From assembly GCA_002269645.1 (NCBI GenBank), contig NIVC01000031.1, positions 1,302,001 to 1,366,000 of the forward strand: DNA of 64,000 bases. The letters run 5' to 3'. Below the pieces are notes generated by a model that worked only from the letters and a program-made list of their open reading frames with translations, did no database searches and was not told where the DNA came from. This DNA is from Macrostomum lignano (Eukaryota). A program made the position numbers and the translations under genes. Positions 1-59,215 of this stretch are shown here, piece after piece (position 1 is the first letter of the stretch; every line of letters starts with the position of its first letter).

Positions 1-591
1 ATTGTTCAATTTTCATTTAGGCATGCACCTAGCATGATCTGAACTATTGATATTGCTCAATAATATAAAGCAGTGTCTTGGCTTAGTAATGGTTTAGTAA
101 GTTAGCAACAAGCACTGGTAGCATGGTAGTTTTATTATTTCTATGTTCTACCATTCTTATGACCTAAGTGCCATTCTGGTAGGCAAATTAATGGTACTTT
201 TGATAGAAGCACAATTTCTCAATCTCTACCTTATATCTTAAACCAAGCAAAAAGCTTGCCTCCTTACCATTCTTGCCATTGCCTCTCTTAGCTCCTGGCT
301 ACCTCATTCATTGTTTAAGAATTACTTTTGATTGAAACATTTAGGGTCCCAACCCAATTGCCAAAGACTAACAAGTTGAGCTACTAAACCTAAATTGACA
401 ACCAATCTTTTGTTTACAATAGACTAAACTTTCAGTTCACCCAAATAATTAGAACCCTTGTAACTTGAGCCATTATAGTCCATATAATATTTAGTCCAAG
501 AATAATTGTGGTACTATTAATATGTATGTTATACTTTCTATTGTAAATACATTTTTCTATCCTAATATTAATAACCCTTTTTGTTTTTCAG

Positions 592-1246
592 GTAAACAGC
601 TAGTGTCTGCTAAAATGGAAATGCTCCAAGAAATACAAAGAGCTAATCAAAGCCCTTCTATTCTTGTAAGTCCATTAGTTTCAACCATTTATTTTTCATT
701 GACAAATATTTCTAAGACTTGTTTTATTATTTATTTGCTTTAACTTTTATTTTAGGGCACAATCAAGACATCCAAGAATATCTATGATTCACAAGACCCA
801 TCTGAAAAACTGAAAATACATATCTGTATTAGATTTACTGGAACTGTTAAAAAAGTTGAATGCTTTCTAATTATTCATCAGTTTGATAAAACTAATTCTG
901 GAATTTCTGAATGCTATCTTGATAGTAAGCTATACCACAATCATGTTGGCATGATTGTCTTTGACTATACTCCAACTGATATGAAATGGTAAGATAATTT
1001 TTGGACTATTTAAACTATGTTGTTCGATTTTTTTCAATTGATTTTTCAATTCAATAGTCACAATTAATTATTTCTTTTTTAATATTTTAGTAATGAAATA
1101 AATGAGAACTTCTTTGTAACTATTGGAGAACGAGATGAGACAAGCTACTTGAAATATCAAGAGTTTATAACCCAGCTTGGCTATCCTGGTAAGTTTATTT
1201 TGTATCATATGCCAGTTAAAACTTTTATTAATAATAGGACCCACTT
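592..1246 (+). CDS. Partial spliced Rel-homology gene, copy A (end of RHD-N plus IPT domain); 5' exons unresolved
   Basis: Exons 592-665, 756-988 and 1091-1188 have AG/GT boundaries, consistent phases (1/0/2/1) and no stops; a possible last exon is 1238-1246. The peptide TSKNIYDSQDPSEKLKI...HNHVGMIVFDYTP resembles NF-kB p50 SDAIYDSKAPNASNLKI...HRQFAIVFKTP. Confidence 0.6.
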
Positions 1247-1440
1247 AATTCTTCCTGACCAGCATATAGCTTTCTGAAGCTGAAGCACCAGTGATAATTA
1301 TTTTTTATGAGCTTAAATTTTTCACAAAAAAGTATAGCTATAGTCCTTAAAAAGAATAAAATACATCCATATTAAAGTAAAATGATAAAAATATTAACTT
1401 TCTCTGCCAGTGACTAGGTTACATCTCTTTGATTCCTGAC

Positions 1441-1650
1441 CCACTCAGAAAAATTGTGTCCTTGAGCAAGACACAGCTCCACATTGCTTCAGTTCTCCTA
1501 GCTGTAAAATGGGTACTAGTTGGGGTAATTGAAGGTATGTGTGGCGACCCCCAGTCCTTGGACTGAACAGCCGTACGCAGCCTTCAGATGCGCCCGCACA
1601 ATAGCTGCGACTGAGCTGTCGGTTGCACATCTGCCTATTGGGGCACAAGT
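1441..1650 (+). mobile_element. 5'-truncated tRNA-derived SINE with CORE-like central domain
   Basis: GTGTCCTTGAGCAAGACAC...CTTCAGTT...CTGTAAAATGGG resembles the CORE-SINE domain; the body matches the copy at 1890-2197 in inverted orientation. Confidence 0.75.
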
Positions 1651-1889
1651 TCTCAGAATTCCATTAAAAAATCTTTCACATGAATCTGTCTGTATAACTT
1701 GTTCTTCATTGATTTTATTGCCTTCTTTGTCTTCTAATTTTCAGATTGCTACTCATCTTAAACATCAATTGGCATAAAAACTTAAATAGACTATCAGAAA
1801 CAGCAAACCCCCTACTGACTCTCGCTGTCAACCCTCTGGTAATCAAGATTTCACGACGAGTGACGGTGCTTTTGCATGCTCGTGGGCCA

Positions 1890-2197
1890 TTATAATAAAT
1901 ATAATAATTGATTACACCTGCCCCAATGGGCAGATGTGCAACCGACAGCTCAGCCGCAGCTATTGCGCGGCGCATCTGAAGGCTGCGTACGGCTGTTCAG
2001 TCAAGGACTGGGGGGTCGCCACACACCCTCAGTTACCCCAGCTATGCTGGCACCCATTTACGGCTTGGGGATGAACTGAAGCAATGCAGAGTTAAGTGTC
2101 TTGCTCAAGGGCACAAATTGTTCCGAGTGGGTTCGGGATTCGAACCCCCGACTTTCAAGTCACGAGTCCGACGCTCTGACCACTAAACTACAACCAC
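1890..2197 (-). mobile_element. Full-length tRNA-derived SINE with CORE-like domain
   Basis: On the minus strand: tRNA-like head with A box TAGTTTAGTGG and B box GGTTCGAATCC, then GTGCCCTTGAGCAAGACACTTAAC core, shared body and an ATT-rich tail. Confidence 0.85.
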
Positions 2198-2624
2198 CTT
2201 ACACTCGACGATTTGTCAGTTAACATATTTAGAATTGCAGTGCACAAAAGCAGGTGTTTCGTAAGTAAGAATGTCAAGTTTCTGTAAGTGGCATGACAGC
2301 AGTCTGCATTTTCTGTTTCACTGCCTCTTTCTTTGCCTGGTTTCTACTCATATAATCAGGCCTACACTGGGCCATGCTTGTCATTCCTGCTCTGGCTGTA
2401 AGATATCAAGGCAAAGACAAGCAAAACAGCACAATCATACACTCATCAATATGTTAAAGTTTTCACACCCAAAACCAGTTGGTCATCTTTTCTTAGATCT
2501 CACCCTCATGTAACACAACTCACACCACGCCCGTGGTTCTCGTCTTAATTAAACCCCAGTGTAGCTCAGTCCAGTGTCTATGGTATGTATAACGCTTTTT
2601 ATTTAATGGCGGGGCCAAGGATAT

Positions 2625-2654
2625 ATTTCACGGCCGGGCCGTGAAATCAGCTAG
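2625..2654 (+). mobile_element. Helitron-type 3' terminus (5' end not located)
   Basis: Perfect inverted repeat ATTTCACGGCC-G-GGCCGTGAAAT (2625-2647) followed by CAG-CTAG|T. Confidence 0.65.
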
Positions 2655-3583
2655 TGCAGAACAGCGCCTGGCTGAGCCACACTTAGGTTCAAGTATAATA
2701 ACCCCCCCCCCAGATTTGCTGTCTATGGCGTAAAGAATGGCTTCGGACTGGGCTTCTAGCATGGATGAAGGAATTACACAGAACAAAAACAAAACTATTT
2801 GTTGAATGGACAAAAGAATAGAATTTTTTATACAGACATCATAACTGCTTTCTTCCTCTGGGCCACGACGGCTTAAGGGAAAGAAATTAGCATTAAAACA
2901 AAAGGTTGTCTGTGTTTAATATACTACAGCATAGTATGTGCGTTAATCGTGACTTTGGAATTTCTCCCGCGTACAAGCTTCAGCCAGTAAGAACTGGGAC
3001 TATTATTAAATTAGAGCAGCCAGTAAAATTCATGGGGGGATATCCCAGTTTTTAGGAAGCCTTGACCATAGACTCTGTTTCAGACGAGCAATCCTTTCTA
3101 TTCCTTCATCCATTGCTTCTAGGCCTCGGCGAACCTCAGCCATTCTGTACGCCAAAGAAGCAAATCTGAGGGGGATGTTATTTTATGCGTAACTGTTAAC
3201 TGTTCAAAGTTTACTTTTTGTAGGGCAGTAATATAGCTTGTAAGAGCTACGAGTAGCTATATCAAGCATATTATCATTGATTGTATTTGTTAACGTATTT
3301 TCCAACCAAGTATTTGTACTTACAATTGGTCTTCACTACTCAACAATCATGCCTTACTATTTTTCTATCCGCAAATACAGGACTGCAAAGTTCAATCAAG
3401 CCAAAGCCAAGTTCAAATCCATACTCCCTACAACTGAAACTGCTGTGTCGTTACCAGCTACACAGCAATGGCAATACTGACAAGTGGCATTGGGCTGAGT
3501 TTTCATCAGAAGCCCTGGTCTGTAAGTGTTTAAAGTAAATCGTAGCTATAAGTGTTACAGGGGTGTTTATCTATAGTTTAATC

Positions 3584-4106
3584 CGCTTCCGGACATTTGC
3601 CCTCCGGCACTTCCCCTCCGGCACTTGCCCTCCGGCACTTCCCCTCGGCGGCGTTTGCCCTCCGGACATTTGCCCTCCGGGACATTTCCCCTCCGGACAT
3701 TTGCCCTCCGGACATTTCCCCTCGGGGACATTTGCTGTTAAAAAGTTGATGAAAACCGTTATATTAATAAATAAAACAATAATACCGTTAAGAAAAACTT
3801 AAAAGTGTCTCAAAAGCTTAAGACTTTAGACTTTTCTCTCGTAATTCTTGTACATTTGTGTACATGTACTTACTTGTTTGAACACACACTGAAGGGAAAT
3901 TTTTTTGTTTCATGATTGTGGAGAAATTTCATTTCCAGAGGGGAAATGTCTTGAGGGCAAACGTCCGGAGGGCAAATGTCCGGAGGGCAAATGTCCCCGA
4001 GGGCAAATGTCCGGAGGGGAAATGCCGGAGGGCAAATGTCCGGAGGGCAAATGCCGGAGGGCAAATGTCCGGAGGGCAAATTCCGGAGGGCAAATGTCCG
4101 GTAGCC
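3584..4106. mobile_element. Mutator/foldback-like MITE with minisatellite-built TIRs
   Basis: Ends CGCTTCCGGACATTTGCCC and GGGCAAATGTCCGGTAGCC; ~150-bp arms made of GGACATTTGCCCTCC repeats; exact 9-bp TSD AGTTTAATC at 3575-3583 and 4107-4115. Confidence 0.9.
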
Positions 4107-4786
4107 AGTTTAATCTCACTGTTTGTCACCAATTCTGTTGTGGGGTCGGAGGTTACTGGGGAATTTCGGAAGTTTCTTGGGGATTTGGGGAAAATACGCA
4201 AATTCTATTACTGAAAGAAGTATGCTTATTGTAACTCCCGGAGCGTGGAAGTGTCCGAGCGGCAAGACACTGTCTATATTAACTTAAACTAATCCAAGGG
4301 AGGGCTACGCGATGGATCGGAGTTGCCTGAGAAACGGGGCGCACTATAGGGGAATCTTAATAGCTAGTAGGGAATGCTGACATGGTGGGGGATGCGCTTA
4401 ATAGGGAATTAGATAAGGGCAGAGCGCCTAATGGTTGCCTAATAGTTGGGAGCTAAATGGTTAGGGAATGCCTAATGGGATAGGGAGACAAAGTAAATGA
4501 TATTAAGGGAAGGGTCTGTAGATAGGCTAAGGCCTGAGCAAACAGTGCGCCTGGATGGGGAGTTGGCAAATCGCCAGGTTAACCAGAGATCTGGGAAAGA
4601 GGGGGGAAGGCAACACGCCTGTCCAACTGATAAAGGGAAGGGGAGGGGTTTAGGATAATTACTAGGGAAGAGACTGTACGTTCTCTTGGGGAGAAGGGGA
4701 AAGGCTGTACGCTTATAGCTAAACAAAACCTTTGGGGGAGAGAGAAGGCCTTCAAAGAAATGACACAGAGTCAGATCTATTTTTAG

Positions 4787-6514
4787 AACAACTGTTCGAT
4801 TAAAACCTTTGCTAGACTAACAGAAAGTGCTAGGCAAGGAGTATACTCTCCTGTCAATTATTTCGCTTATATTTAAATGATTTTCAGCAAAAATGGCGGT
4901 CACATTCAAACAAAATTTCCGCTAGGTAACATACTTACTAGTATTAATGGCACGTGAGTATTTATGGCTAAGAAAATAATATTTTACGCTTATAGATGTC
5001 AAATTTTTTATCAAGAACAAAATTTGTGCGTAAAAGAAAGGCAACGTGAATACAGCTATTAATGATGTGCATGATTATCAGAGTACCTGCCACATAAGGT
5101 GTTTTTTAACTTGAAGTTTTGAGCTACTATTGACAATATGAATCGAATTGTGCCCGATTGTAGACTTGCCGAAGCCTCCAACTGTATCGGATGTTCAACC
5201 ATACGATATTACACTTAAAAATGGGGATATCGTTGAAGTACTGGTACATTTTAGTCGGCCTATAATTACTGGTGAGTGTTCGTTTTGAGCTGTTGAGTAT
5301 AGTAAAATAGCCTGCACTGAATCCCTTTCCCTCTGCCTTAGCCAACATGGAACCAATTTATGACGCCAATTCTATTTTAAGCATAAGCCGGAGCACATGC
5401 TAGTACGCTCGTACCAATTCGGCAGGCATTGAGAACACGTGCGATTTTTATAGCATTCCGTACCTCAGTTCAGTTCTGAAAATGTGCGTTTTTTTACCTA
5501 TTTTATGCCATCACAACTCTGAAAATTCATACTGGAGCACACAGATTGTCGGTGACCAAGTTAATAGTTAAAAAATTGGTAAAATATCTTGCTTGGCTTT
5601 AACCACTTCGTAGACTAGCTCAAGCCCATAGATCTTATATTCCCTAGATAGGCCACTTTGTATTGCGGCAATAGGAAAAGCGCGACCGCTGTTTTTCGTC
5701 ACTTGTGCGAAAAAAGCCGACGGGTTGTTTCCATTTTGAGTTCAGTAGCTTAAAGACATAGACGCTATTTTTTGAGAATTGAATAAAACTTCTCATGAAT
5801 TAAATAAAAAGCTACTCACTTAAACTAATAATGATGAATTCACATGAATTCACTGCAGAAACTACTGACGAAATTGAGTTCAGTAGTTTATTTTCGCGCT
5901 GTCGCGAGATGCATGTGAAATTGCCCCCATGTGACTTTTGGGCCTTTCTACAGTTGACAGAGCGTCTGGCTGGGCATGGACAAGCCCCGTTGCCAAAACT
6001 TTTTTGCAGATATGCAGTATGTCAATGTCATTCACTCATTGGTTTTTAAAAAGAATATGCTCGTAAAAACTTGTTAACGTTTTAGATTACGACAATCTCA
6101 CTGGCGTCACGCTAACCAGCTCGGATAAAGTATCTCTGGTCAATTTCGAACTCAATGGGGTAATTTTTTATTTTAATTTCTAACCCAGAATTAAGTGAAG
6201 GAAATAAAAGACAAATAAATAAAATAAAGTTGTCTTTATCTTTAAATCTATTTTAGCACCGACTTCGCCTAAAACTGACAAAATGCACCGACAACCATCA
6301 GGAATTTACAAACGTCGAACGCTTTTTTGTCACTATCTGTCTCCATGGCAACAGTAATGGAGTCGAATGGAAAGATATCCAGTCGACAATCATTATTCAA
6401 CTGCCAATGGATCCAATTTGGACCAGCGGCAGTTCGTCGGCGATTGTCGCTCCGCCAAGCTTGCGGGACCGGCGCAACAGACCGGTGGCTGATCTGGACG
6501 CCAGCTTCATCTGA
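4787..6514 (+). pseudogene. Rel-homology paralog, copy B, probably decayed
   Basis: Open exons 5859-6016 (phase 1 to 0) and 6257-6514 (phase 0 to stop). The last exon RLRLKLTK...ERFFVTICLHGNSN matches copy C LLKLQLTK...EQFMAKLCLTKESN. The upstream block 4996-5271 (ICA*KKGNVNTAI...IRCFL...ELCPIVDLPKPP, GTGAGT donor at 5272) is RHD-like but has in-frame stops at 5031, 5112 and 5139. The 5' limit is tentative. Confidence 0.5.
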
Positions 6515-6946
6515 TGCTGGCCAACTGTTCGGCCAAGTTTCGTTTCTGGAAAATGTCAGAGAGGCAATGACATCGCCTTTCTGTTTTTTTTTCGGTATAA
6601 TTTGTATCATTTGCTTTCTGCTTGTTTATTAAAATCAAGCCTCATCTTGCTTAATAATTTTTTAACATTATTCAGAAGGGCAATTACACCGCCTTCCTGT
6701 TTAATCTTTTGTTAAAAGTATTGTAATCTCGGTGTTACTTTCTTATCTGTAAAAAAATAAAATATTGTTTGATATGAAAAAATATACATCCAGGCTGAAT
6801 CCAATTTTGATGTACATATGAAAAAAATAGAATAGAAAGAATTTCTTTGTATATATTTAATTTATAGTAACATTAATTTGATGATGCTATTAATACAGAT
6901 GTGATCGTAGGGGATACATGTAGACTAACAGGTCAACAGAGGCAGG

Positions 6947-9900
6947 CTAATCCTGTCTAGGCCTTTTCGCTCGATTGTGCAAAGAAGGTGTTTTTAGCTG
7001 ATTCAGGTAGATAAACCGTACATCCACGCTGGAAGTTAATCTTCCAGAAGAATTGCTCTCTTTGGTCAAGCAGAGCTTTGCCATGAACTGCTCCTCGGGG
7101 AGATTCGCTATGGTGTCTTGGACTTCCAATTTGGTTAGTTGCAACTTCAAAAGATTCTACAATAATGCGAGGAAGTTTAAACTGAAATCTGTCAAAATAG
7201 GCTACATACGCAAGATGGGGGTGATTCCTATGGGATTAGATACATATATAGAGGCGATCATGGATTAGATTACTGGTGGCCTTACACGCTGTACTTCCAC
7301 TGGAATAGATACTTCCACAGACAATGGATTAGCTGTTGCAGCGCTGGTGCATGGTACCAGTAGTTGAGCAGATATCGTCTCCGATTTCTTTTCTGAAATA
7401 AGTAGAATATAAATATGAATTATATAGTACTTTCAATAAATTTAAGCGAAATAAGCCTTTTTTATCAGTTAACTAACTAATATCAGCTTCGAGCTGCACC
7501 CAGATGTCTGACGTCATCGGATATTGCAAGTCGCGCTTAAGATAGACGCAAACTGGATTGAATGCTTTGACACCAAACGATTTGCCACCGTCACTGCCTG
7601 ATTGGCCTGTGGGTTGTAAATGTATCATTTGTCATGCCATTGGTTTGGTGACAATCACTGACCATCTGAATAATTCCCTACAGAATCGCTGAGCATCTGA
7701 ATAATTGCCCCCACAGAATCGCTGACCATCTGAATAATTCCCTACAGAATCGCTGACCATCTGAATAATTCCCTACAGAATCGCTGACCATCTGAATAAT
7801 TCCCCTACAGAACCGGTGACCATCTGAATAATTCCCCTCTATACAATCGCTGACTATCTGAATAATTCTCCTGTGGAATCGCTGACCATCTGAATAATTC
7901 CTATGCAGAATCACTGATCATTTGAATAATTCCCCTTTACAGAATCGCTGACCATCTGAATAATTCCCCTCTATACAATCGCTGACCATCTGAATAATTC
8001 TCCTGTGGAATCGCTGAACATCTGAATAATTCCCCTACAGAACCGGTGACCATCTGAATAATTCCCCTCTATACAATCGCTGACCATCTGAATAATTCTC
8101 CTGTGGAATCGCTGACCATCTAAATAATTCCCATCTACAGAATCACTGACCATCTGAATAATTCTCCTCTGCAGAATCGCTGATCATCTGAATAATTCCC
8201 CTCTACAGAATCGCTGACTATCTGAATAATTCCCCTCTACACAATCGCTGACCATCTGAATAATTCCCCTCTATACAATCGCTAACCATCTGAATAATTC
8301 CCCTCTACACAATCGCTGACCATCTGAATAATTCTCCTCTGCAGAATCACTGATCATTTGAATAATTCCCCTTTACAGAATGGCTGACCATCTGAATAAT
8401 TCTCCTGTGGAATCACTGACCATCTGAATAATTCCTATGCAGAATCACTGACCATCTGAATAATTCCCCTCTACACAATCGCTGACCATCTGAATAATTC
8501 TCCTCTGCAGAATCACTGATCATTTGAATAATTCCCCTTTACAGAATGGCTGACCATCTGAATAATTCTCCTGTGGAATCACTGACCATCTGAATAATTC
8601 CTATGCAGAATCACTGACCATCTGAATAATTCCCCTCTACAGAATGGCTGACCATCTGAATAATTGTTAACTAGAGAATTCATGTGACAAGTAAAGTTAG
8701 TTCAAAACTCACACAAAATTGGTTCGGAAATGGCATAGGAGTTCAGAACCATTTGAATATCATCCGGAACGAAGGCGAACAGAAGTCGCACGCTTTGCTG
8801 GACTTCTTTAAGAGGATCAACGGACAATGGACCGGAACTTTCGTCATTCGGGTTGTCTATGGATAAAAGGTACATTTAAAAGTACATTTGCAGTATCTGT
8901 GTAATAGTAATTGCTATGGTATAGCTTATACAAAAAGTAAGCAAAACTTACGAAACATTCTGCGCAGATTACGTGAGTTACACTGAGAATCTTCAGATGA
9001 ATTAAACAGTTCGTTAAGCATTTTAGCCTTTTGATCGACACTTTTTAGAACGTCACAGTTTTTACACTTTACAATCCCGATTTTATTGAATCTGAAATGT
9101 TAAAACCATGCGTTATAATGTTATAAATGTATACTGTTAATAAATTTTACATTTTACAAATGGAATGACCGTTAAACAGTTGATGAGACGAAGAAATAGA
9201 CAAAGGATTTTGACAAAATGTACAGATAGATTAGAGACAGACAGACGTGATACGATAAAGACAGACACTCAAATAGACAGACAGACACAAGCAGATGGAC
9301 AACAAAACAGACAGGTAAGGCAAGCAGACGGACAGACAAAGACAAGTAAGCAAGCAGACGGACAGACAAAGACAGGTAGGCAAGCAGACGGACAGACAAA
9401 GACAGGTAAGCAAGCAGACGGGCAGACAAAGACAGGCAAGCAAGCAGACGGACAGACAAAGACAGGCAGGCAAGCAGACGGACAGACAAAGACAGGTAAG
9501 CAAGCAGACGGACAGACAAAGACAGGTAAGCAAGCAGACGGACAGACAAAGACAGGTAAGCAAGCAGACGGACAGACAAAGACAGGTAAGCAAGCAGACG
9601 GACAGACAAAGACAGGCAGGCAAGCAGACGGACAGACAAAGACAGGCAGGCAAGCAGACGGACAGACAAAGACAGGTAGGCAAGCAGACGGACAGACAAA
9701 GACAGGTAGGCAAGCAGACGGACAGACAAAGACAGGCAGGCAAGCAGACGGACAGACAAAGACAGGCAGGCAAGCAGACGGACAGACAGACATTAAGATG
9801 AACGCACAGACAAGGCCATATCGTGACTTACAAAACAGGGATGCTAGTTTCACTTTTTGGCAGCTTGATTTTCTGTCGATAGACACCTGCTGTTGGGCAG

Positions 9901-10762
9901 CAGTAGTCGCCCTTCAAATTCCAAGGATGCACTTTTAATGGCGGCTCGCCAAAGATAGTGCCATTGGTATCAACCAGCAGCACAATCAGCTCTCCATAAA
10001 CATCGAATTCGCGCTGATATCCATCAGTCAATTCCAATGCAATCTTAATAAATTCACCTTGACCATTGTCGTTCCGACCTTTCAGCAAACTTCCAACTGC
10101 CTTGGAGCTGCCTCGTCTAATAAAGTCATTAATCTCGCCATCAGATCGATGGCGATAGGATGATACAGGTTGGTTACTGACTGTGATTTTCACCTTTGGC
10201 CATGGTTGCTGCTGCTGTTCGGCCTATAAAGTGGATAATGAAATAAAGAGCTATTAGTAAGACTGCAATTGTCTGACTAATTTAAAACTGATGTTGATAT
10301 AAAAATTATTAAGGACTTAAATTCGAAAAAAATTCCTCATCTTGTCAAACTAATTTTAGAATAAAAATGAGTATAAAATGAGTACATTTTTAAAGAGATT
10401 TTTTTTTACTTTCAAGAATATTAGCAATACAAATAAACAATACATAAATTTATAATTGATCTGCAACTGTTGCATTTAGCTTCATTATTTATTATCAAGT
10501 AAAGCAGAATACACAATGAAAATATATTAAAATAAGAATTACCCCATACTCAGGCTGGTTTTGTAGAAAATCTCCAGTGCTATTAACACCTTGGTCAGTC
10601 TAAAAAAGTTTTACAAGTAAAAAAATTAAGACAATAAATTTAATTAAATGTTGTTAAAATCAACAACAATCAAGATCTTACGAAGCTTTCAATAAACCTA
10701 TTTGGGTCAGCTATCAACTTATCCACTTCTGATCTATTGCTATAATTGTTTTGTGCCATCAT
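6947..10762 (-). CDS. Complete Rel-homology (NF-kB/Rel/NFAT-family) transcription factor gene, copy C, 419 aa: RHD-N + IPT + terminal NLS
   Basis: Eight exons: 10762-10682, 10599-10543, 10223-9832, 9091-8952, 8856-8713, 7606-7478, 7392-7286, 7156-6947. All introns are GT-AG with matching phases, giving 1260 nt with no internal stop. Collinear RHD motifs: NQPVSSYRHRSDGE (RelA EQPKQRGMRFRYKCEG), VHPWNLKGDYC (PHPHELVGKDC), FNKIGIVKCK (FQNLGIQCVKK), SVRLLF...AISEPIL (AVRLCF...VLSHPIF), VRFIYL...KRPR (MEFQYL...KRKR). Confidence 0.87.
7653..8665. repeat. Intronic minisatellite, ~30-33-bp unit (CTGACCATCTGAATAATTCCCCTACAGAATCG), ~31 copies
   Basis: Visible tandem repeat inside intron 5 of the Rel-like gene. 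Confidence 0.97.
9290..9790. repeat. GACA-derived 30-bp minisatellite (CAAGCAGACGGACAGACAAAGACAGGTAGG)
   Basis: About 16 tandem units in intron 3 of the Rel-like gene; explains the ORFs at 9165-9938. Confidence 0.97.
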
Positions 10763-11774
10763 AAAAAGTTATTTAACAAATATTATTTGTCAATTTTTAT
10801 TAATTATATTTGTATACAGTTTTAAAATACAAAATTGACAAAATGACCAAATGACAACAAATTTTACACCTACACTAAACTCACTAATATAGAAAGTCTT
10901 AGGTTTACTTTAATAAAATTAGAGATGGCCAAAAGTGATTTTTGCTACCACCCAATGTCCCAAAACTTGAAATTGAAATTTGATATATACCCGAAACCTG
11001 AAAATGACCCAAAATTTTAAAGCCAACAAAGGCAAAGCAATCTAGCTTTGATAAACAAAAGCTATTGTGAAGTTTCAGCTGAAAGCCTATTCTTCTTCTC
11101 AGTCACAATGAGTCCCTCAGCACTGAAGACAATACACTGGAGGCAGGCACAACAAGAATGTGCCTAGCAAGCTTTTCAATTTCATTTGTCAATATAAAGC
11201 TGTGCAAAAGACTAGGCTTTTGGTGTTGGTGTTTGGGGGTTGCCAACTTGGGGGTTTAGGGTCAAATAGGCCTAATGAAAGGAGGTGATCAGTGGAGCCC
11301 ACAAGTTTAGGTGGTGAACAAACCCATAAAACTCCATTTTGAGGAGAGAGAGAGAGAAAGACGGTTTAAAGTGGCAAACATTGAGGGAGTGGAAGAGAAA
11401 GGAAGGGTGGCTAAATTGACAAACATATAGAGAAGGGAGAGGAGTTAAATGGGGGCAGATTTAGATTTGCTTCTTGTCTTCTATATTAAGTTTATGGGCT
11501 TATTATTGATTTATATAGATCAATTTGCTAATTATGATTATGTTATGTCTGGTATCCTGTCCATGCCCTAGCAGTGCCTAGTCTAGACTCTAGAGTTAGG
11601 GTGATGCTTTCACTGCTTAGCTAATACATAGGGAAAGGTGCCAATAATAAAACCAATTGAATCTCGGCATAGTCCTAGCTATCAGCTTACACTGTTACAA
11701 TTGCTATATACACTAAGCACAAGCCCAACCCTCTATTCTAGAGGAATCATTAAATTTAATTGATTTATTAGCAA

Positions 11775-11910
11775 ATTTTTTTTTATTTTTTTGTTTTATT
11801 TTTTTTTGAAATAAAAATAAATAGGTTTTATTTGCATTGAATGCACCTACCCGTCTAATATACAGCAACCCGTGGGTAGAAGTTGGGGTGGCTATTACAA
11901 ATAGGCTACA
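11775..11910 (-). mobile_element. Possible LINE/SINE 3' end with A-rich tail
   Basis: Minus strand reads ...TGCATTCAATGCAAATAAAACC followed by a long interrupted poly(A); no coding remnant recognised. Confidence 0.3.
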
Positions 11911-12481
11911 ACCTTTCTACTGGAGAAGCAGGCTGGCCAAAGAAGGTTATAAAAATTCTGTATTCATACATATAAGTTTTACATTTGACTTGGCAGCCAT
12001 CTAAGAAGAGATACACATTAAACTTGGCCATTTGATTGATTGATCCACTTAGCTTTAGATATAAGAATGAGCTTGAAATTTCAGGTATCAATATACCCAA
12101 AAGTGTAATACTAGAAATCAAAATTATAACCCAAAAATTGCAATAAAAATGCCTAAAATTTTGAGTACCCAAAATTCTAGCTAAAATTTTGGGCCATCTT
12201 AAAATAAAATTTCTTAAATTCAACAGTTCTTACCTAAAACTAGAAGTGCACATAGCTAAAAATAGTTAAAAGTAATATTTTTTCACTAAAATCTTCAACT
12301 AGGCCTATAGCACTGCTTAACTTACTAACTTTTTTTTCAATTTTAAACAAACAATCTTTGATTTATTTGTATGGCTTTAACTCTATATAACATTTTGAAC
12401 CTAAGAGTTAATACTAAATGGTACTATGCACTTTTAAAGTTTGTTTGTTTTTTAGAAAGACAACAACCAATCTAACCTATG

Positions 12482-13059
12482 TGGCAATAGTGCAGTTTCA
12501 TTCGCAAAATTATTTTTTGTTTAAATTTGAAAGTTTGAAACCAGAAAACAATAACAACAATGTTTTAAACCATTCTAGCAACTGTGCCAGAGCTCACTGG
12601 TCACGGAACTTTAAAGCAAATGGGTGCTCTATTAATATTAATATACTTTTTTCATTAAATCTTGCCATGCTCAAATGCTACTTGAAAGTTGAAATGCAAT
12701 TTGTCTATGGAAAAAAAAGTTTAAAAAATTGAAAGGGGCTCAAGTGGGGGGGGGGGCTTGAACTGTTTCCCTTTAGCTGAGAAGCTGCTAATATCTGCTT
12801 TTTCTTTTGGACAACATATTGTATTATGGCTGGACAACCACCAAGACCCTTGTGGATAATTCCGCCGAATGAAGTGCTGCTAGCGAATGCTCTACCGCAA
12901 CTAGAGCTAAATGTGCGCAACCTGATGGCTGCCATGGTCTCTGCCACAATCGTTAGAATAATTTAAAACATCAATTTTTATTGTTGTTATTGTTTTCTGG
13001 TTTTGAACTTTCAAATTTAAATGAAAAATAATTTCGCAAACGAAACTGCACTATTGCCA
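12482..13059. mobile_element. MITE-like element with ~110-bp TIRs
   Basis: TGGCAATAGTGCAGTTTC...AACAATAACAACAAT at 12482 is mirrored by ATTGTTGTTATTGTT...GAAACTGCACTATTGCCA ending at 13059; TSD unclear. Confidence 0.75.
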
Positions 13060-13552
13060 ATACCACCTATGCTTATATCTATTTTCTTTTTGATCTAAGT
13101 TGAAAAAAGGTATTAAATAAGTTTTAAAATAGACCAACTTTTAGCTATTATATATGTTTACTTCAAATAAAGTAAATGATTTTGAATTTGATATAATTCT
13201 TTATCAATTTATTCTTTGTATAAATGACTATATATAATGTCTGAATTTTATAACTTAATTAGAAGAGATACTATAAAAAAATATATGATGCTTGTCTATA
13301 TTTATAAAATATAAGGACTATAAGCAAACAATTGTTATATATACCTATATGGCTATATCTATATACTCAACCTTCTTATTTATATAGGGGCTTATACCTT
13401 TGCCTTTTTCAACATATAAAACTAAACTATATTTAAGCCAAGACTAAAATCCTAAGGTTCTTTATGTAAACAAGATTTGTTTCCCAATCTAAAGAAATGA
13501 AAAGTTCATTTGAATGAAAGAAAGCCAATGACTTCTATTAGGCCACTTAATG

Positions 13553-14433
13553 GGTGACTGGTCATTTCATCAAAAACCTTTTCATCAAAAGCCTTTTCGT
13601 CAAATAGTCATTTGGTCAGTTCGTCAAAGTGTGTGTATAGTTTCAAATGTAAATTGAAGTTACTCTAGATTAGTCACATGTATACTCAATAGGTCAGCAT
13701 TAAAAAGAAGTATACTGTTTGTTTAAAATACTGTTTCTAAGAAAAGGCACAAATCATAGTAGCTAGGGCCTTTTCATATTGCTTGTTCTGGTTCCAGAAC
13801 CAGAACCAATTTGTGAAATATAACTTTTTGTCTCTATAACTAGAAGGAGATACGTGCTAAAAAGTTTTTATTATTGAATGACAATCGCCAAGAAGAAAGT
13901 GAAAAATTCTGCTGAGGTTGTTAAGGCAGTCAAACATTCAACAGAATTAAATAGTTATACTGCTGTTTTTTTGGAAGATCCAAACCGATTCTGATTCTGG
14001 AATCGGTAATATGAAAAGCCTCCTAGTTAGATTACTCATAATTGCATAGTAAAATATCAAAACCATGCAATTATACCGTTATTGGTATTAATATTAATGA
14101 AATAACATAATAAAAGCATAATTTCACTAAGTAAAATACTATGTCCATCACAAAGCTAAGAATCAAGATGTAAAAGGAAAATTATAAGTTAGGGTTAGGG
14201 TTATCCTTTTTCATGTTTCATTCTTAGAAACCCTTTGCTTAAACAAAAGGTAGTGAAGTCCTTTTGATATTGATTTATCTTGACATTAAATTATTTATTT
14301 TAAAAACTAATTAAATTATCTAAAAATTAATTACAATGGGCTTTATTTTATCTACCATTTGACGAAATGACAAATTTACTGTTTGACAAAAAAACTTTTG
14401 ACAAAATGGTATTTGACAAAATGACCTAGAACC
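13553..14433. mobile_element. Mutator-like MITE with a nested smaller MITE (13766-14023)
   Basis: Ends GGTGACTGGTCATTTCATCAAA and TTTGACAAAATGACCTAGAACC; direct repeat ACTTAATG (8-10 bp) on both flanks. The inner element has GGGCCTTTTCATATT / AATATGAAAAGCCTCC ends flanked by TA. Confidence 0.75.
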
Positions 14434-16757: not shown

Positions 16758-17313
16758 CAGGGGCATCGCCATCGGGGAGGACAGTGGGGCATGTGATGCC
16801 CCCCCCCCCAGTAGAAGCCATGGGGGACATGCCAACGTACGCTAGCGCTTTGTTGAAGTGTAGCTCGTCTAACATATAGTAGGAAAATAAACGTCAACAA
16901 AAACATAAAATAAAATTTTCTTTCTAGCCAACGCGTTTCGTCAAACACAAGACGCGTCGTCAGGGCAAATTCAATTAACCTTAGTTCACAACACCAATAT
17001 ATTTAAGCAAAACAAACTGTACAGTCCAAAGGCTGTATAAATTCCAAATAATTTGCTTCAAGGCAACAAACACATCACGCCTGCAGCACCAAACTAAGTG
17101 CCTACAGCGGTGAAATGTTTCCTGCAGCACCAAAATGAGTGCCGGCGATGCTAAAATGGTGCCTGGGAAGTTAAAATGAGTGCCTGCATGCGGCGCCAAA
17201 ATGATCGATGACAACACCGATTTGGAAATACAGGAATTTAGTCATGTAAATTTATTCATGTAAAATTCTCGGCTTTGTCCCCCCCACCAGAAAAATCCAT
17301 GGCGACGCCCCTG
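16758..17313. mobile_element. hAT-like MITE
   Basis: TIRs CAGGGGCATCGCCAT / ATGGCGACGCCCCTG (14 of 15 match); degenerate 8-bp TSD AAGGGTGC / CAGGGCGC. Confidence 0.7.
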
Positions 17314-17324
17314 CAGGGCGCGCC

Positions 17325-19380
17325 TCAGGGCCAGGTCACGAAAGAACGCCACGCCGCCGGCCGAATCCAAGGCGCCGGCGTCAGACAGCAGGCAATCGAC
17401 GAAACGCCGAGTGCGCGCCTGCCCTTGCCGGTAGGGTGCCTGCGCGGCGCGGGAATGATGTGGCCTGCTAGCTGAAGTCGCCGACGAATGTCGCTTGGAC
17501 GGATCAGGCCGGCGGGGTGATACAAAGCCGCCGCGTTAGTCACTTGCTCGTAGCCGATCTTGATGGCGGCGCGCAGCAGGCCAGCATGCACGACATCAAC
17601 TGGTTGCTCAAGCGAATCCGTCAGCGTCCAGGTCTCGGCGTTGTACAGCAGGACGGTCTCGATCATCGCCTGGAACAACGCCACACTCTGGCGGTCAGGT
17701 AAGGCCTCGGACTTTTGGAGCACCTTCAGAACGAAAGGCAGCCCAGGCAAGCCCGCGGCAACGCCGCGAATCCTCGCGAACGCCGGGAACCAGACCGCCG
17801 AGGTAGACCAACTGCTGACAACGCAGGAGCTCTTTCGCCTGTCCATCAGCACCTCGGCACAAAATCGCAGCCTCCATGTTGTCCGGGACACAGAGCACAA
17901 CGGTCTTCTGCGTGTTGACCACCAGGCCGACACTCGCCAAACTAGCAAACTAGCAAACTAGCTTGTCCAGTTGTCCAGGGTGCCCTCGACAGTTGAGGAC
18001 AGCAGGGCGAGATCGTCAGCGTAGCCAAGCACGCTGAGCCGCCTCTCCGGTTGACGTCGACCCACGCGTCGCCGCAACAGAAAGCCGTCGTCGTTGGTAG
18101 GAATGTACCAGGCCACGCGGCCTCTGGCATTGGGCCTAGCGGCAGAGACGGCCCGAATGGCGTCATCAACAGCAGCCTGCTGGCGCTGCAGATAGACAGC
18201 CGCTAAGGCCTCCTCTGCCACGAGGGTTGGTCGCCTGCTCAAACGGAGCCTCTCCAGCTCTTCCCTCGCATTCCGAATCGCGGGGTCATCTTGCCATACT
18301 GGCTGCCCCCGCGCTGGGCCGGTCGCATCAGCGGGACTGCTTGCTCCGGGGCGGCTCGAACTGCAGCGCACACCTCTGCGTACTCGGCACCTCCACGCTT
18401 GCCGCCGAGCGCAGTGATGAAAGCGCTGGCAAAGCGGCTGTGCGTGTTGGCGTCAGCGGTGGCCGCTTCGGCGGACGTAGAACGGTTCGCGAAGACGAAG
18501 GTCGCAGACGATCAGAAGTCGATGATCGGACCGCAGAGTAAGCGGCGTGATGGCGCGGCCATTGACGACGCGGCGGCGCTCGCGGAAGCGCGCCAGCACA
18601 TGATCGCTGAGCCTGCCTCCGTGTTGCGTTCCGGCCACACGCGTTCCGCCACCTGCGCTTGCAGCCCACAAAAGTTGCGAGTCTGCCCAGCGGCTTGCGG
18701 AAGCGAGTGTTGGCCGACACCATGTCCTGCCTCTCTAGGAAGTCCTCCAGCGCTCCAGTGCCGTTCTCACGCGGTGTGACGAACAGTGACCGCTCGGACC
18801 TACACAAAACCGCGTTCAGGTCTCCAAGGATGATCACTGTGACACGCTGTGCCGTAGTTGCCTCGACCCGTACCGAGATCGAGCTGCTCAAAAAAGTCTT
18901 AAGCCTCATCAGGGCGGGTGGCAGGGGGCGCATACGCGCAGAACAGGCGAGCGTTCTAGCCTCGAAGCCGAACGTCGACCCGAAGCAGCCGAGGGGACAG
19001 GGAGACGCAGTGACAGCTCTGCTGCAGCCTTGGTCCGACCAGCGCTCCAACTCCTCCACGGCCTCGTTGGTCCGCCGATGTGTAGTAGAGGGTCCATCCG
19101 GCGCCCAGCTCCTCACAGTAAAGCTCTGGGTCAGCCTTGATACACACCTTCTGCAGTGCGATGACATCACAGCTCAGGTCGAGCGCTAGCTTTGCCAGAG
19201 CCCCTCCACCGCCAGGCGGCCTTGAGCGTGCGGCAGTTCAGCGTCTCGAGCCGAAGCGTGGTACGGCCCTGTGGTACGGCTGGGGCTCGATGTAGATGAG
19301 CCTCTCGGTCCCTGGCGCCACCCAGAAGATCCGCGTATGGGCCAGCGCGGCAGCAGCTCGGCGGGGCATCCCCACGTCAC
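17325..19380 (-). mobile_element. Degenerate RTE-clade non-LTR retrotransposon (endonuclease plus RT C-terminus; RT core deleted, frameshifted)
   Basis: AP-endonuclease motifs DVIALQ, GRGGVGALV, IILGDLNA, VSANTRF, SDHRLL; RT motifs GYADDLALLS and YLGG; RTE-type tail LLYNAETWTLT...[10 protein letters not shown]; spread over several frames. Confidence 0.9.
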
Positions 19381-19845
19381 CAGTTGGAAAAAATTATTCA
19401 ATCAAATAAAACGAAAAATGACAGTTGATTAGAGAAACGATGCATAATTAGATAACCACAAAGAGAATTCGTCAGCTAAGGCATCAAAATTGTTAAATTT
19501 AACCATACAAACTGACAATAGTCGTATAATTTACTACTTCTTTCATGTACTTTTGACAAGGAACACTGTATATAGCTATTTTTGTGTCGTAGCAGGCGTG
19601 GCGCACGAAGAGATCCAGTTTTATTACTTCTAGTACTTTTAGTCTGTCTCAATTGCCTCAGTTTATAATAATCTCCGACTTTTTACTGGCGCAAACATCG
19701 CTCTGTCCGCATGTTGCTAAATTTAGCTTATTCTGTATCAAAACAGTATGATGTGTCAGCAAGGCACCAAACTCAATAATTATACAGACAGCATTATGTG
19801 GCACCAAGAGTTGCTCCGTTCCCTCACAGCCCATCGCTCTCGCAG

Positions 19846-22616
19846 TCACGATGAGGCACTCAGGAAGCTGTGCTGCAGCAGCTCCGCGGTGTCCGCTCGC
19901 TTCATCGGGTCATAGTCTACGCACCTGAGGTAGAAGTCCTTCAGGTCGGCTGAGAACCCGTCCGCAATCCGAGGCATCGCCCGCCCTTCGCACCTCAGGA
20001 TAATGATGCGGTGCTGCGGCTCTTTGCCATCAGGAGGCTGCATGGTCGTCAGCTCATACACGGTGCAGCCGAAGGCCCACACGTCGGTTTTGGCTGAGTA
20101 CGGAATCGAGTCGTCCTCGCCCATGAACAGCTCGGGCGCCATGAAGTTCCAGGAGCCTTTTGGCTGGTTGCCTGCGCTCAGGCTGCAGGTGTTGAAGATC
20201 TCCCTGGCCAGACCGAAGTCGATCAGCTTGATGACGCCCTCGTTGGTGAGCATCACATTGGAGCTCTTGATGTCACGGTGCAAGATGGCGCCCTCCGGCT
20301 GGCAGTGCAGGAAGTTCAGGCCTGAGCAGATCTGCAGGTGGAGCAGTTTTGAGCAGTCATAAAATTGGATCTTTCCAATTTTTATCCCACCCACACTGAC
20401 CTGATCTCATACTGATCCGACACTCATCCCACCCATGCCAGGCAAACCCAGAGAATCCAGAGACGCACCTGTCTGGAGAAGTCTCTGACCCCGGACTCCT
20501 TGAACGGCTTGTTCTGACGCTGCATCAGCTCAAAGAGGCTGTGACCCGAGACCAGCTCGGTGAAGATGTACATCCCATCCGAACTCTGCTCGCACTTGAG
20601 GAACTGCACAATGTTGGGATGCGAGAGTTGCTTGAGGATCTCAACTCCACGATTCTCCATCTGAAGTTTTTTCTTCAGTTCCTCTGCGTCTTGTTCAGCT
20701 TGGCTCAGGGGCAGCACCTTGACAGCCACCGTCTGGTTGCGGTCTGTGAGGGCCTTGTACACCTCACCGAATCCGCCATGGCCGATGAGCTGCTTCTTGT
20801 TGCCCTGCAGGATGAAGTCCCAGTCGGTGAAGCTGGGGTCCAGCTGCTTCTTGGGGCTGAAACATGAGGTGAAGGAATTTGATAAATTTTGAGCTGCTTT
20901 GGGCTTCCTAAGTACTATGGAGTCACTCAGCCTTCTGCATCACCCCTCTGCGTCACCGCCCTTCTGCGTCACCACCCCTCTGCGTCACCACCATTTTGCG
21001 TCACCACCATTTTGCGTCACCACCATTTTGCGTCACACCCCTCTGCGTCACCACCATTTTGCGTCACCACCCTTCTGCGTCATCACCCTTCTGCGTCATC
21101 ACCCTTCTGCGTCATCACCCTTCTGCGTCATCACCCTTCTGCGTCATCACCCTTCTGCGTCATCGCACTTCTGCGTCTGCCTGCCTAAGAGAGCAGCTGA
21201 GCTGACTGTCCTAAAATACATGTACATGCACAAAAGCCCTGATGGAAAAGCCATTTCCAATACGAAACCTGTCTTCCCAAATCAACACCTGTAGCTCTGA
21301 CCCCAAAATACACATTAAGATTGGGAGCGCCATGGGGAGCTACCCTGACAAATTCATGATGCCCCTCGCTTGACGGCGGCGCTGCTAAGAATTTCAGGAA
21401 AGTGCCGATCAGGAAAGCGCAATGAATTTTCGCCAAACATATATCAGTATTTTTAGTGTCAGGCAGCAGTTCTCATCCATGACTCACTCAGCTGAGGCGG
21501 CAGTCGGCGCTGAGCTGCCAGCGGGAGGCCGAGAGGCTTCGAGCCGCCGCTGAGTGGAGGAAATCCAGGCCTGCTTTGCTCTTTGGTCTTTGTAGGACCT
21601 CTCTACAGCATCAGCCGGTGTTTCGCCCTCTTTGTTCTTCAAGCTGAACATTTCGGCTCCGATTTGGTCAAAAATGAACTGAAGCGAGTCGACTGGCTGA
21701 GATGCAGCGGCCAAATGGACGGCCGTGTGACCGTATTTGTCAGGAACTGTGAGACAGTCGCTGCCGGCCTCATTCACCAGCCACTTCAGATTTGAATTGT
21801 CAAAATTCACAGCAGCAAAGTGAAATGCTGTTTTATCACTCTTTGTCTTCAGCCGAAAGCCGTCAGTTCCGATCTGTCTCTTGATCCACTCCAGCGACTC
21901 GATACCCTGATGCTTAGCGGTCAAATGGACAGCCGTGTAACCGTTTTCGTCAGGAACTGTGAGACAGTCGCTGCCGAGCTCCTTCACCAGCCACTTCAGA
22001 TTTGAATTGTCAGACTTCTCAGCAGCAATGTGAAATGCTGTTCTATTCCACCGTCCCTTCAGCCGAAAGCAGTCAGTTCCGATCTGTCTCTTGATCCACT
22101 CCAGCGACTCGATGCCCTGATGCTGAGCGGCAAAATGGATGGCCATGTCACTTGATCTGTCAGGAGCTGTAAGACAGTCGCTACCGAGCACCTTCACCAG
22201 CCACTTAAGACAAGAATTGCTTTTTCTGTTCATAGCGGCAAAGTGAGCGACTGTGTATCTCTTTATATCGACAATTCTCAAGCAGTCTCTGGCTCCCTTC
22301 TCTTTAATCAGCTTCATCCAAGATTCGTCCTGATGCTGGGCTGCCAAGTGCACTGGAGTCTCATCACTTTCATTTCTATGTGTCAGACAGCCGGTTCCGA
22401 ATCTGTCAATCAGCAGCTTCAGGCACGACAATCTCACCGGCTTGCAGGCCACGTGATGGACCAGCGGCATTTTGCGAAGTTCTTCAAATTAAAGGGAAAG
22501 TCTTGCGTGTCGAACCCGCCCACCTCCAGCTCGATGTTGCTGTCGATCTCACCGCACAGTCGCTGCAGCTCCTCGCTGTCTCCAGCCTCCAGCGCCGCTC
22601 TCAGCTTCCGCTCCAT
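19846..22616 (-). CDS. Ankyrin-repeat / STE-like (MAP3K-type) Ser/Thr kinase fusion gene
   Basis: The ankyrin exon (22481-21488, ~9 repeats such as ETPVHLAAQ, YTAVHLTAK, HTAVHLAAA) ends at a phase-2 GTGAGT donor and splices in frame to kinase exons 20856-20469 (GHGGFGEVY, VAVK) and 20331-19846 (HRDIKSSN, DFG, APE, DVWAFGC). Probable ATG at 22616; the join to the ankyrin exon needs a 71-nt intron or a frameshift. Confidence 0.88.
20930..21180. repeat. 16-bp minisatellite (CGTCATCACCCTTCTG) in the ankyrin-kinase intron
   Basis: Visible tandem repeat; explains the ORFs at 20889-21294. Confidence 0.95.
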
Positions 22617-23832
22617 CTCTGTTGCCCTGGCTACACTGCTTCTCCTAGCAGCGCTTCTCTGCCGATCTGCTGTCTGCCGCAGCTGTTCCACACGGCTTCA
22701 AACTGAGTGCTTTGCTCTTCTTCAAGCGAATTTGCCTGCCAGCTCAGCAGCAGCAGCAAAAGTCCCGCTGTCACGGACTGAAATCTCTGAGCTCTCCCTG
22801 TGCAGAGAAATTTGTTTAAATGGACTGAGGCCGATTCTCTTCTCTGACCCAGCGGCTGTGTTTGAGGCCTGATTGGGTGCCAGGGGGTCCGGCAGCTGCT
22901 CTGCTCAGCGGGGTGAGAGATGCAGGAGCAGTGAGATGCTGCGAGCTCTGCTGAGTTAAACAATGAGAGCTGACTGTGGCTGCGTGCTCGGCATAGCAAG
23001 TGCATTGTCAGTGGGCAGGGGTGAAGGGGCGGCAGCTGAGACACGAGGGGAGAGATGGAGAGGGGAGGGAGGGCAGGGCTGAGGCTTGGAAGCCAAGCAG
23101 AGCTCTCTGACGATTTTTAATTTACTTTGCAGATAATGCTTTAAATTGAGGATTTTTCTGTTGCTAAATTCAAATAGATGAAGAATGGCCGCTTAGGTTT
23201 GCCAGCGACAATTTACATCTTCCAATATACTAAAAATGAAAATCTTGCTTGCTTGTAATCGATTAGAGAAAAAATGGCTGGACCGATTTTGTTCGAACTT
23301 GCACTGTTCGATCAGAAATTTTTCCGTGACTGTACATGCATCGTGGCTAAGAAATTGCTCGATGCTAAAGGCATTAAATATTCGAAAAACATGCTTTTTT
23401 GCAAAGGTCAAGCAGCTCTTTCGACTTGAAATGCATTGTAAGAATGCTAGAGAAAAAACTGGCTGGTTGAATTCTGATTCTGAAATAGATTGCATCATCA
23501 CTGAATTGTAACTCCGACTTGAATTGAAAATGCAGTGTGGAAGCGTAGCACCAGACTTGATTTAAATTGCGTAACCATATTGTTAACTGATACTGACTGA
23601 CTGAGAAACTGATTATGTCATAACTGCTTCGTGTGATTTACTCTATGCTTGGATTTTAAAGTGTTGAATTATATAAGTGCAAAATTGATGTTATCAAAAT
23701 GATGAGAGCTAGCCTAGAGGTGAACAGACTGAACTGCTAAATGCAGAGACGATGGTTCGAATTTTCATAGAGTATAATTTTTTAATTAAAGCTTTTCAAC
23801 GTCAGGAAAACTAAAAGACTTTTTAAAAAGAA

Positions 23833-33059: not shown

Positions 33060-33122
33060 TTTAGGGTTAGGTTAGGGTTAGGGTTAGGGTTAGGGTTAGG
33101 GTTAGGCTAGGGTTAGGGTTAG
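33060..33122 (+). repeat. Interstitial (TTAGGG)n tract, ~10 units
   Basis: TTAGGG repeats with minor variants inside the 3' module of element A. Confidence 0.9.
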
Positions 33123-42500: not shown

Positions 42501-42897
42501 GGCAGTGGATAGCACACTAGTGAGCCATTGTCAGGGCAGTGGATAGCACACCAGTGAGCCATTGTCAGGGCAGTGGATAGCACACCAGTGAGCCATTGTC
42601 AGGGCAGTGGATAGCACACCAGTGAGCCATTGTCAAGGCAGTGGATAGCACACCAGAGAGCCAATGTCAGGGCAGTGGATAGCACACTAGTGAGCCATTG
42701 TCGGGCAGTGGATAGCACACCAGTGAGCCATTGTCAGGGCAGTGGATAGCACACCAGTGAGCCATTGTCAGGGCAGTGGATAGCACACCAGTGAGCCATT
42801 GTCAGGGCAGTGGATAGCACACCAGAGAGCCAATGTCAGGGCAGTGGATAGCACACCAGTGAGCCATTGTCAGGGCAGTGGATAGCACACCAGTGAG
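39552..42897. repeat. Satellite, 34-bp unit (GATAGCACACCAGTGAGCCATTGTCAGGGCAGTG), ~98 copies
   Basis: Near-perfect tandem array. Confidence 0.99.

Positions 42898-50852: not shown

Positions 50853-59215
<8,363 letters not shown>

Follow-up and report, generated by a model that had tools for sequence, protein, structure and literature searches.

Is the split gene on the minus strand at positions 10762 to 6947 of a 64,000-nucleotide (nt) stretch of the Macrostomum lignano genome (assembly GCA_002269645.1, contig NIVC01000031.1, positions 1,302,001 to 1,366,000; hereafter the window) a Rel-type transcription factor and, if it is, what kind of Rel-type factor does this flatworm carry? An initial annotation of the window, made from the letters alone, had described an intact eight-exon Rel/NF-kB-like gene that ORF calling had missed, with every Rel homology domain (RHD) landmark in order and a short p50/p52-like architecture. 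We consider it probable that a real, intact and lineage-restricted RHD-type gene is present in the partly duplicated M. lignano genome in three or more near-identical copies, of which this is one. It is a very divergent member of the known Rel family and not an overlooked gene family, and it has diverged too far for a tree to be meaningful or for assignment to a subfamily, be it Rel, NF-kB (p50/p52-like) or NFAT.

Gene model and sister copies

The gene structure proposed in the initial annotation could be rebuilt to the residue. Eight exons give a coding sequence (CDS) of 1,260 nt, which encodes 419 amino acids plus a stop and ends in ...RAKRPRQD, and introns 1–7 are all of the GT..AG type with phases 0,0,2,1,1,1,0. 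Exon 1 (10682–10762, residues 1–27, beginning MMAQNNYS) has in-frame ATGs at 10762 and 10759 and a GTAAGA donor, and is followed by exon 2 (10543–10599, residues 28–46). Exon 3 (9832–10223, residues 47–177, ending in phase 2) encodes the opening part of the N-terminal, RHD-like domain, which continues through exon 4 (8952–9091, residues 177–224) and closes in exon 5 (8713–8856, residues 224–272). The C-terminal half begins with exon 6 (7478–7606, residues 272–315) and extends over exon 7 (7286–7392, residues 315–350) and exon 8 (6947–7156, residues 351–419), the last of which ends in the TAG stop at 6947–6949. Two introns are occupied by minisatellites, a 30-nt unit repeated about 17 times in intron 3 (9275–9788) and a 34-nt unit repeated about 31 times in intron 5 (7651–8665). 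A bacterial-style listing of open reading frames (ORFs) yields fragments of the gene only, together with long spurious ORFs on both strands that arise from the intron 3 minisatellite. An alternative exon 7 donor at 7274, which would add 4 residues to give a protein of 423, was rejected; the annotated sister copy described below uses the donor equivalent to 7286.

A word-indexed search of 5.8 billion proteins with the window protein returned just two matches, both from M. lignano. The best is GenBank PAA81993.1 (BOX15_Mlig027372g2; UniProt A0A267G7I1; P0001 in our set), which bears the UniRef name ‘RHD domain-containing protein’ and is encoded on contig NIVC01000504.1 at a sister locus (L001) collinear with window positions 1–14200, that is, over 14 kb. 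It shares its eight exons, seven junctions and stop with the window copy, and the 14 splice sites match bar two single-base differences in intron 4, one at donor position 3 and one in the acceptor tract. Because the GenBank model uses these seven junctions and the splice sites are conserved, the junctions of the window copy are not a chance construction. The two proteins share 96% of their aligned residues (93% when BLASTP counts the indels); they differ by 16 substitutions, by a 1-residue deletion in the sister copy and by 15 additional residues at the end of its exon 2, where an in-frame indel lying between direct repeats of CCTGAG leaves the window copy 45 nt shorter. Outside the exons, intron 2 of the sister copy holds about 3.1 kb of extra DNA (L001 10451–13527) that is absent from the window, and intron 5 measures 1,106 nt in the window versus 450 nt in the sister copy, a difference explained by the 34-nt minisatellite together with alignment gaps. 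Insertions and changes in repeat number are therefore the main difference between the copies. The start of the gene differs as well: directly before its ATG the sister copy has TTTTTCAG (L001 9995–10003), a possible splice or trans-splice acceptor, and at window positions 10759–10765 the sister’s CAG is an ATG, so that the AG is lost and a second in-frame start is gained (MMAQ versus MAQ).

The expectation that annotation had passed over this gene thus fails for the family, which is already annotated, and correctly so for the sister copy with its RHD name. It survives only for the window copy, which is without a correct model: the exact window protein is absent from a collection of 15 billion proteins, and its sole trace is a mis-modelled and misnamed entry (P0124; UniRef A0A1I8J8N8, 234 residues, ‘Cadherin domain-containing protein’) that is identical to it over exons 3, 5 and 6, lacks exon 4 entirely along with the last part of exon 3, and translates exon 7 in a wrong frame. 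A third, distinct M. lignano copy is represented by P0003. In the older UniProt models P0002, P0003 and P0124, ...CCPTA/CSTA is joined straight to exon 5 (DNPNDE) from an internal donor at 9887 in exon 3, with the in-frame loss of 65 residues that include the best-conserved RHD motif (FNKIGIVKCKNCD); this exon-4-skipping form may be a genuine isoform or a prediction artefact common to the models. Literature searches on Mlig027372, on M. lignano together with NF-kB and on conserved intron positions in RHD genes returned nothing specific.

Rel homology of the N-terminal domain

On the sequence comparisons, Rel homology appears to be real, if weak, and confined to the N-terminal DNA-binding domain. 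Among the 24,736 Pfam families scanned, the top match was RHD_DNA_bind (PF00554): the window protein scored 19.5 bits (E 1e-3), its N-terminal part by itself 21.4 bits (E 2.8e-4) and the sister copy 25.6 bits (E 1.4e-5). Hidden Markov models (HMMs) were also built from an alignment of 24 vertebrate Rel proteins, with the RelA RHD sequence checked against PDB 1NFI; the one for the Rel N-terminal domain gave the window protein 17.7 bits (E 1.3e-7 at Z=1), compared with a best score of 8.3 in 3,000 shuffles. When the same model was run over all six frames of the 64 kb, the top segment was exon 4 and the second was exon 3, and the scan found no other RHD-like segment in the window. A profile alignment by hhalign returned E 0.003 over 66 columns, reaching from HPWNLKG to FNKIGIVKCKNCD.

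The residue pairings place these scores in a recognizable order. In the MAFFT alignment with RelA, SYRHRSDG (10137–10160, residues 68–75) pairs with the recognition loop RFRYKCEG, HPWNLKG (9909–9929, residues 145–151) with HPHELVG, FNKIGIV with FQNLGIQ, SVRLLF with AVRLCF and SEPI with SHPI, the last two in exon 5, where SVRLLFAF and SEPI mark the end of the N-terminal domain; FNKIGIVKCKNCD in exon 4 (9052–9090) pairs with RelA FQNLGIQCVKKRD. The claim that the landmarks occur in order thus stands for the collinear N-terminal series SYRHRSDG, HPWNLKG, FNKIGIVKCKNCD and SVRLLF, and falls short at the recognition loop, whose signature is not conserved, as well as in the C-terminal half. In the loop the first arginine has become serine, with F>Y, Y>H, C>S and E>D, and the second arginine and the glycine are the only residues identical to the Rel signature R-x-x-R-x-R-x-x-C-E-G (RFRYxCEG). 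Likewise, the 12-residue linker of RelA that bears Arg187 is deleted in the flatworm protein. Of the residues that contact DNA in published RelA structures, Arg35 and Lys122 are kept, and Glu39 (to Asp), Tyr36 (to His), Arg33 (to Ser), Cys38 (to Ser) and Lys123 (to Asn) are changed, with the Arg187 linker missing. Because DNA-contact residues are changed and the Arg187 linker is deleted, canonical kappaB specificity is unlikely.

Gene structure supports Rel homology independently of the sequence scores. Intron positions and phases were compared with those of alligator RelA (P0018), as placed on its genomic locus (L002). Intron 3 of the M. lignano gene, in phase 2 at the codon directly before the F of FNKIGIV, is an exact match to the phase-2 intron of RelA before the F of FQNLGIQ. 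Intron 4 (phase 1, RMF^HNPNDE) lies within one codon of a phase-1 RelA intron (PFN^VSLEE), beside an indel, and intron 5 (phase 1, PIL^CQSG) approximates the RelA linker intron (phase 1, YDN^RAPNT), where the flatworm protein is 12 residues shorter. From about 5 RelA introns and about 870 position-phase slots, we estimate the chance of one exact match plus a same-phase near match at a few per thousand.

Structure prediction, for which the sister copy PAA81993.1 served as the query, as it did in the search of representative proteins, bears on the two-domain fold (p53-like plus IPT) that the initial annotation had put forward. A second AlphaFold run, given P0001 and P0002 aligned by MAFFT with 33 Rel proteins, modelled residues 61–287 at a predicted local distance difference test (pLDDT) score of 52–88, and in a Foldseek search with that model all of the 30 best PDB matches were NF-kB/Rel chains, led by p52 (7CLI, E 7e-10). 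Because the Rel alignment imposes the family, this outcome is not proof; the model is compatible with a Rel fold. Of the proposed fold, only the N-terminal part (the s-type Ig DNA-binding domain) was modelled, with the bias of the Rel alignment, and the C-terminal part (IPT) was not.

Several results weigh against reading the gene as an intact RHD-type factor. Every RHD_DNA_bind score lies below the curated Pfam cut-off of 27 bits, the hhalign probability was 10% only, and a phmmer search of 1.84 billion representative proteins with the sister copy (E<=0.001) recovered no homologue outside M. lignano, only M. lignano fragments. The first, single-sequence AlphaFold model of the sister copy was unusable (pLDDT 30), and in the run with the Rel alignment the C-terminal part stayed at pLDDT 29–44. 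Against the Rel dimerization domain, residues 273–419 scored -0.3 bits by HMM, like shuffles, and P=0.48 by hhalign. Finally, coding divergence between the copies equals intron divergence (nonsynonymous divergence (dN) 0.017, synonymous divergence (dS) 0.015, short introns 0.018), and there is no overall sign of purifying selection between them, a comparison of low power at 20 substitutions.

Taken at their most severe, the sub-threshold scores would mean that the protein has no Rel homology, the likeness having arisen by chance or by convergence in a beta-rich protein. Also in keeping with this are the phmmer searches of PDB sequences with the full protein, the N-terminal part and the C-terminal part, which gave nothing significant, and the bias that the Rel alignment brought into the fold match. 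We nevertheless regard this explanation as highly improbable: the best of the 24,736 Pfam families was the very one predicted beforehand, the independently built HMM gave 17.7 bits against at most 8.3 in the shuffles, the exact match of intron position and phase falls inside the best-aligned block, and the RHD name of the sister copy comes from a separate database rule. The relation to the Rel homology domain is thus borne out through the N-terminal domain, by Pfam, the Rel HMM and intron position alike.

Divergence between copies and the C-terminal half

The coding sequences of the two copies are separated by 20 substitutions, 16 nonsynonymous and 4 synonymous (dN 0.0166, dS 0.0147, ratio about 1.1). 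Where non-coding DNA can be cleanly aligned, it differs by 1.8% in the short introns, 1.4% in intron 3 and 2.7–3.4% in the flanks, and the CDS by 1.6%. Since coding divergence is equal to that of the introns, purifying selection on the N-terminal domain is not demonstrated. The replacements are unevenly placed: 16/16 fall in residues 1–275 and 0 in the last 144 (P about 0.001 for this split), and across residues 56–190 dN/dS reaches 2.9, with 10 nonsynonymous changes and 1 synonymous one. They are concentrated in two patches, which vary across all three known copies. The first, IN[D/N]F[I/N][R/S][R/Q]GS[S/T], lies just after the recognition loop and reads NDFIRRGSS in the window copy and NNFNSQGST in PAA81993.1; the second, G[D/E][Y/H]C(C)[P/S]TA, follows HPWNLKG and reads DYCCPTA and EH-CSTA, respectively. 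The two indels, of 45 nt and 3 nt, leave the reading frame undisturbed, and neither copy has gained a stop codon.

Such figures would also be expected of a redundant duplicate drifting to loss, in which constraint was relaxed after genome duplication, the RHD-like N-terminal domain is decaying and the frame is intact only since the copies are young (about 1.6% diverged). The overall dN/dS near 1.1, its rise over residues 56–190 and a CDS that has diverged no less than the short introns or intron 3 agree with this account, as do the lower Pfam RHD score of the window copy (19.5 versus 25.6 bits for the sister) and its ATG in place of the sister’s CAG ahead of the start. We judge it rather unlikely, in view of the full frame kept in both copies with in-frame indels only, of splice sites that have all been kept, and of a C-terminal stretch of 144 residues without a single replacement, against about 5 predicted at the neutral rate (the 16-versus-0 split above); besides, 20 substitutions give such tests little power.

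Residues 273–419 matched neither RHD_dimer (PF16179) nor TIG in Pfam, and nothing in the PDB, which leaves the second half of the landmark series proposed by the initial annotation without statistical support; weak matches to DUF6175 (E 0.009–0.05) and DnaA (E 0.87) were dismissed as noise. About seven stretches of alternating hydrophobic residues are compatible with an Ig-like sandwich. By eye, VCVYLKRD resembles FLLCDKVQ of RelA, and RFIYLN with KRPR resembles EFQYLP with KRKR; these are resemblances only. The basic cluster RAKRPRQD (6950–6973, residues 412–419), ten residues past FIYLN, is a candidate nuclear localization signal. As the initial annotation had noted, the protein has no ankyrin or transactivation tail: the 419-residue ORF shows no glycine-rich region, ankyrin repeats or activation domain and stops four residues past KRPR, at the same place as the annotated sister model, beyond which the next called gene lies on the opposite strand.

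This half might therefore be something other than an IPT or dimerization domain, so that an RHD-type N-terminal domain would sit in a new architecture, for example as a monomeric binder or a regulator that does not bind DNA. Its lack of likeness to Rel dimerization domains and to any Pfam or PDB entry, a length about 30 residues beyond that of an IPT domain, its failure to fold in the AlphaFold run on the Rel alignment and an evolution very different from that of the N-terminal domain all lean this way. Against it are the seven or so alternating-hydrophobic stretches, as in an Ig-like sandwich, an F-x-Y-L motif with a basic cluster after it, spaced as at the end of the RelA RHD (a resemblance by reading only), a phase-1 intron at the domain linker as in RelA and the frequency with which sequence searches miss fast-evolving IPT domains. 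On balance we hold a new architecture to be somewhat unlikely.

If the gene is the intact RHD-type factor that we favour, residues ~55–272 would form an RHD-type beta-sandwich contacting DNA. The remodelled recognition loop, with one of its two arginines left, Glu replaced by Asp and the Arg187 linker gone, would then, if it binds DNA, probably not recognize a canonical kappaB site. Residues ~273–405, with their alternating hydrophobic stretches and a protein sequence identical in both copies, may serve as a partner or dimerization module, probably a degenerate IPT domain, and RAKRPR as a nuclear import signal. Together these parts would make a small nuclear subunit that binds DNA or serves as a partner; because it has no built-in inhibitor or activation domain, its regulation would come from separate proteins. 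A bolder version, which we put forward as quite doubtful, is that of a Macrostomum-restricted Rel offshoot that has retained the RHD DNA-binding fold only, with a rewired loop diversifying between copies and a frozen C-terminal domain whose fold is another one or has changed beyond recognition, neofunctionalized towards a new DNA specificity and new partners.

Relation to other Rel-type factors and surroundings of the gene

With vertebrate RelA, c-Rel and RelB (PF00554 plus PF16179; PDB 1NFI, 1RAM) the flatworm protein shares the collinear landmarks of the N-terminal domain, the intron before the FxxxGI motif and the terminal basic cluster. It differs from them in its identity of only about 20%, in having SYRHRSDG for RFRYKCEG and in being without the Arg187 linker, a recognizable dimerization domain and an activation domain. 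The gene contains neither the glycine-rich region and ankyrin repeats of class I NF-kB proteins (p105/p100/Relish) nor, past the RHD, the transactivation domain of class II Rel proteins (RelA/c-Rel/Dorsal), and at 419 residues it leaves no room for regulatory regions of the NFAT type. The loop SYRHRSDG fits neither the Rel type (RFRYxCEG) nor the NFAT type (RAHYETEG). The NF-kB of Nematostella vectensis is an RHD protein that naturally lacks C-terminal ankyrin repeats, with a canonical RHD that binds kappaB sites; the flatworm protein is, unlike it, far more divergent and without a glycine-rich or activation region.

Closer comparisons come from flatworms. Platyhelminthes have been reported to be without p50/p105 (PMC11432056), and in Schmidtea mediterranea seven highly divergent RHD factors were described along with a conserved NFAT5 and no clear NF-kB, in a study that did not include M. 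lignano (Development 2026, PMC13563047). The M. lignano gene fits this flatworm pattern of divergent RHD genes as a macrostomid example: like the S. mediterranea factors (PMC13563047), which lie on long branches, it is a flatworm RHD gene that cannot be assigned as a clear NF-kB homologue. It differs in that the M. lignano protein has no detectable pairwise similarity to proteins outside Macrostomum among the 1.84 billion representatives, so that any orthology to a planarian gene is hypothetical. An early-branching, genetically tractable flatworm with a minimal, RHD-only gene offers a handle on the fate of Rel-type factors in the phylum, with the proviso that the name Rel-like is honest for the N-terminal domain alone. 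Were the neofunctionalized offshoot true, it would sit in a phylum where a clear NF-kB is hard to find.

The surrounding region is eukaryotic, AT-rich and laden with minisatellites. A GC-rich gene (0.53–0.58) on the minus strand at 17300–23050 combines ankyrin repeats (ORF 21484–22470) with the C-lobe of a Ser/Thr kinase (ORF 19846–20394), an STE-like domain whose closest solved kinases are SLK/STK10/ASK1/MST. We rejected these ankyrin repeats as a split IkB-like partner of the RHD-like gene: they lie 5′ of it on the same strand and are joined to the kinase domain. An 8.4-kb satellite array follows at 23829–32189 (23-nt unit, about 371 copies, 92% matches, strong AT skew), then an interstitial telomere-type TTAGGG run of about 10.7 copies at 33061–33122 and, at 39552–42897, 3.3 kb of tandem 34-nt units (98.5 copies, 97% matches). 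Numerous other minisatellites and microsatellites occupy 43–59 kb, including an 86–88-nt repeat family at 52.8–56.0 kb. Two proteases are encoded on the minus strand between and among these arrays. An M1-family aminopeptidase at 36831–39214 is divided over two abutting ORFs, the first (37835–39214) with Peptidase_M1_N and M1 and the second (36831–37838) with the end of M1 and ERAP1_C; the split near 37836 hints at an intron of very short length, a frameshift or an error in sequencing. The other is an ORF at 50853–51536 with an astacin (M12A) metalloprotease domain.

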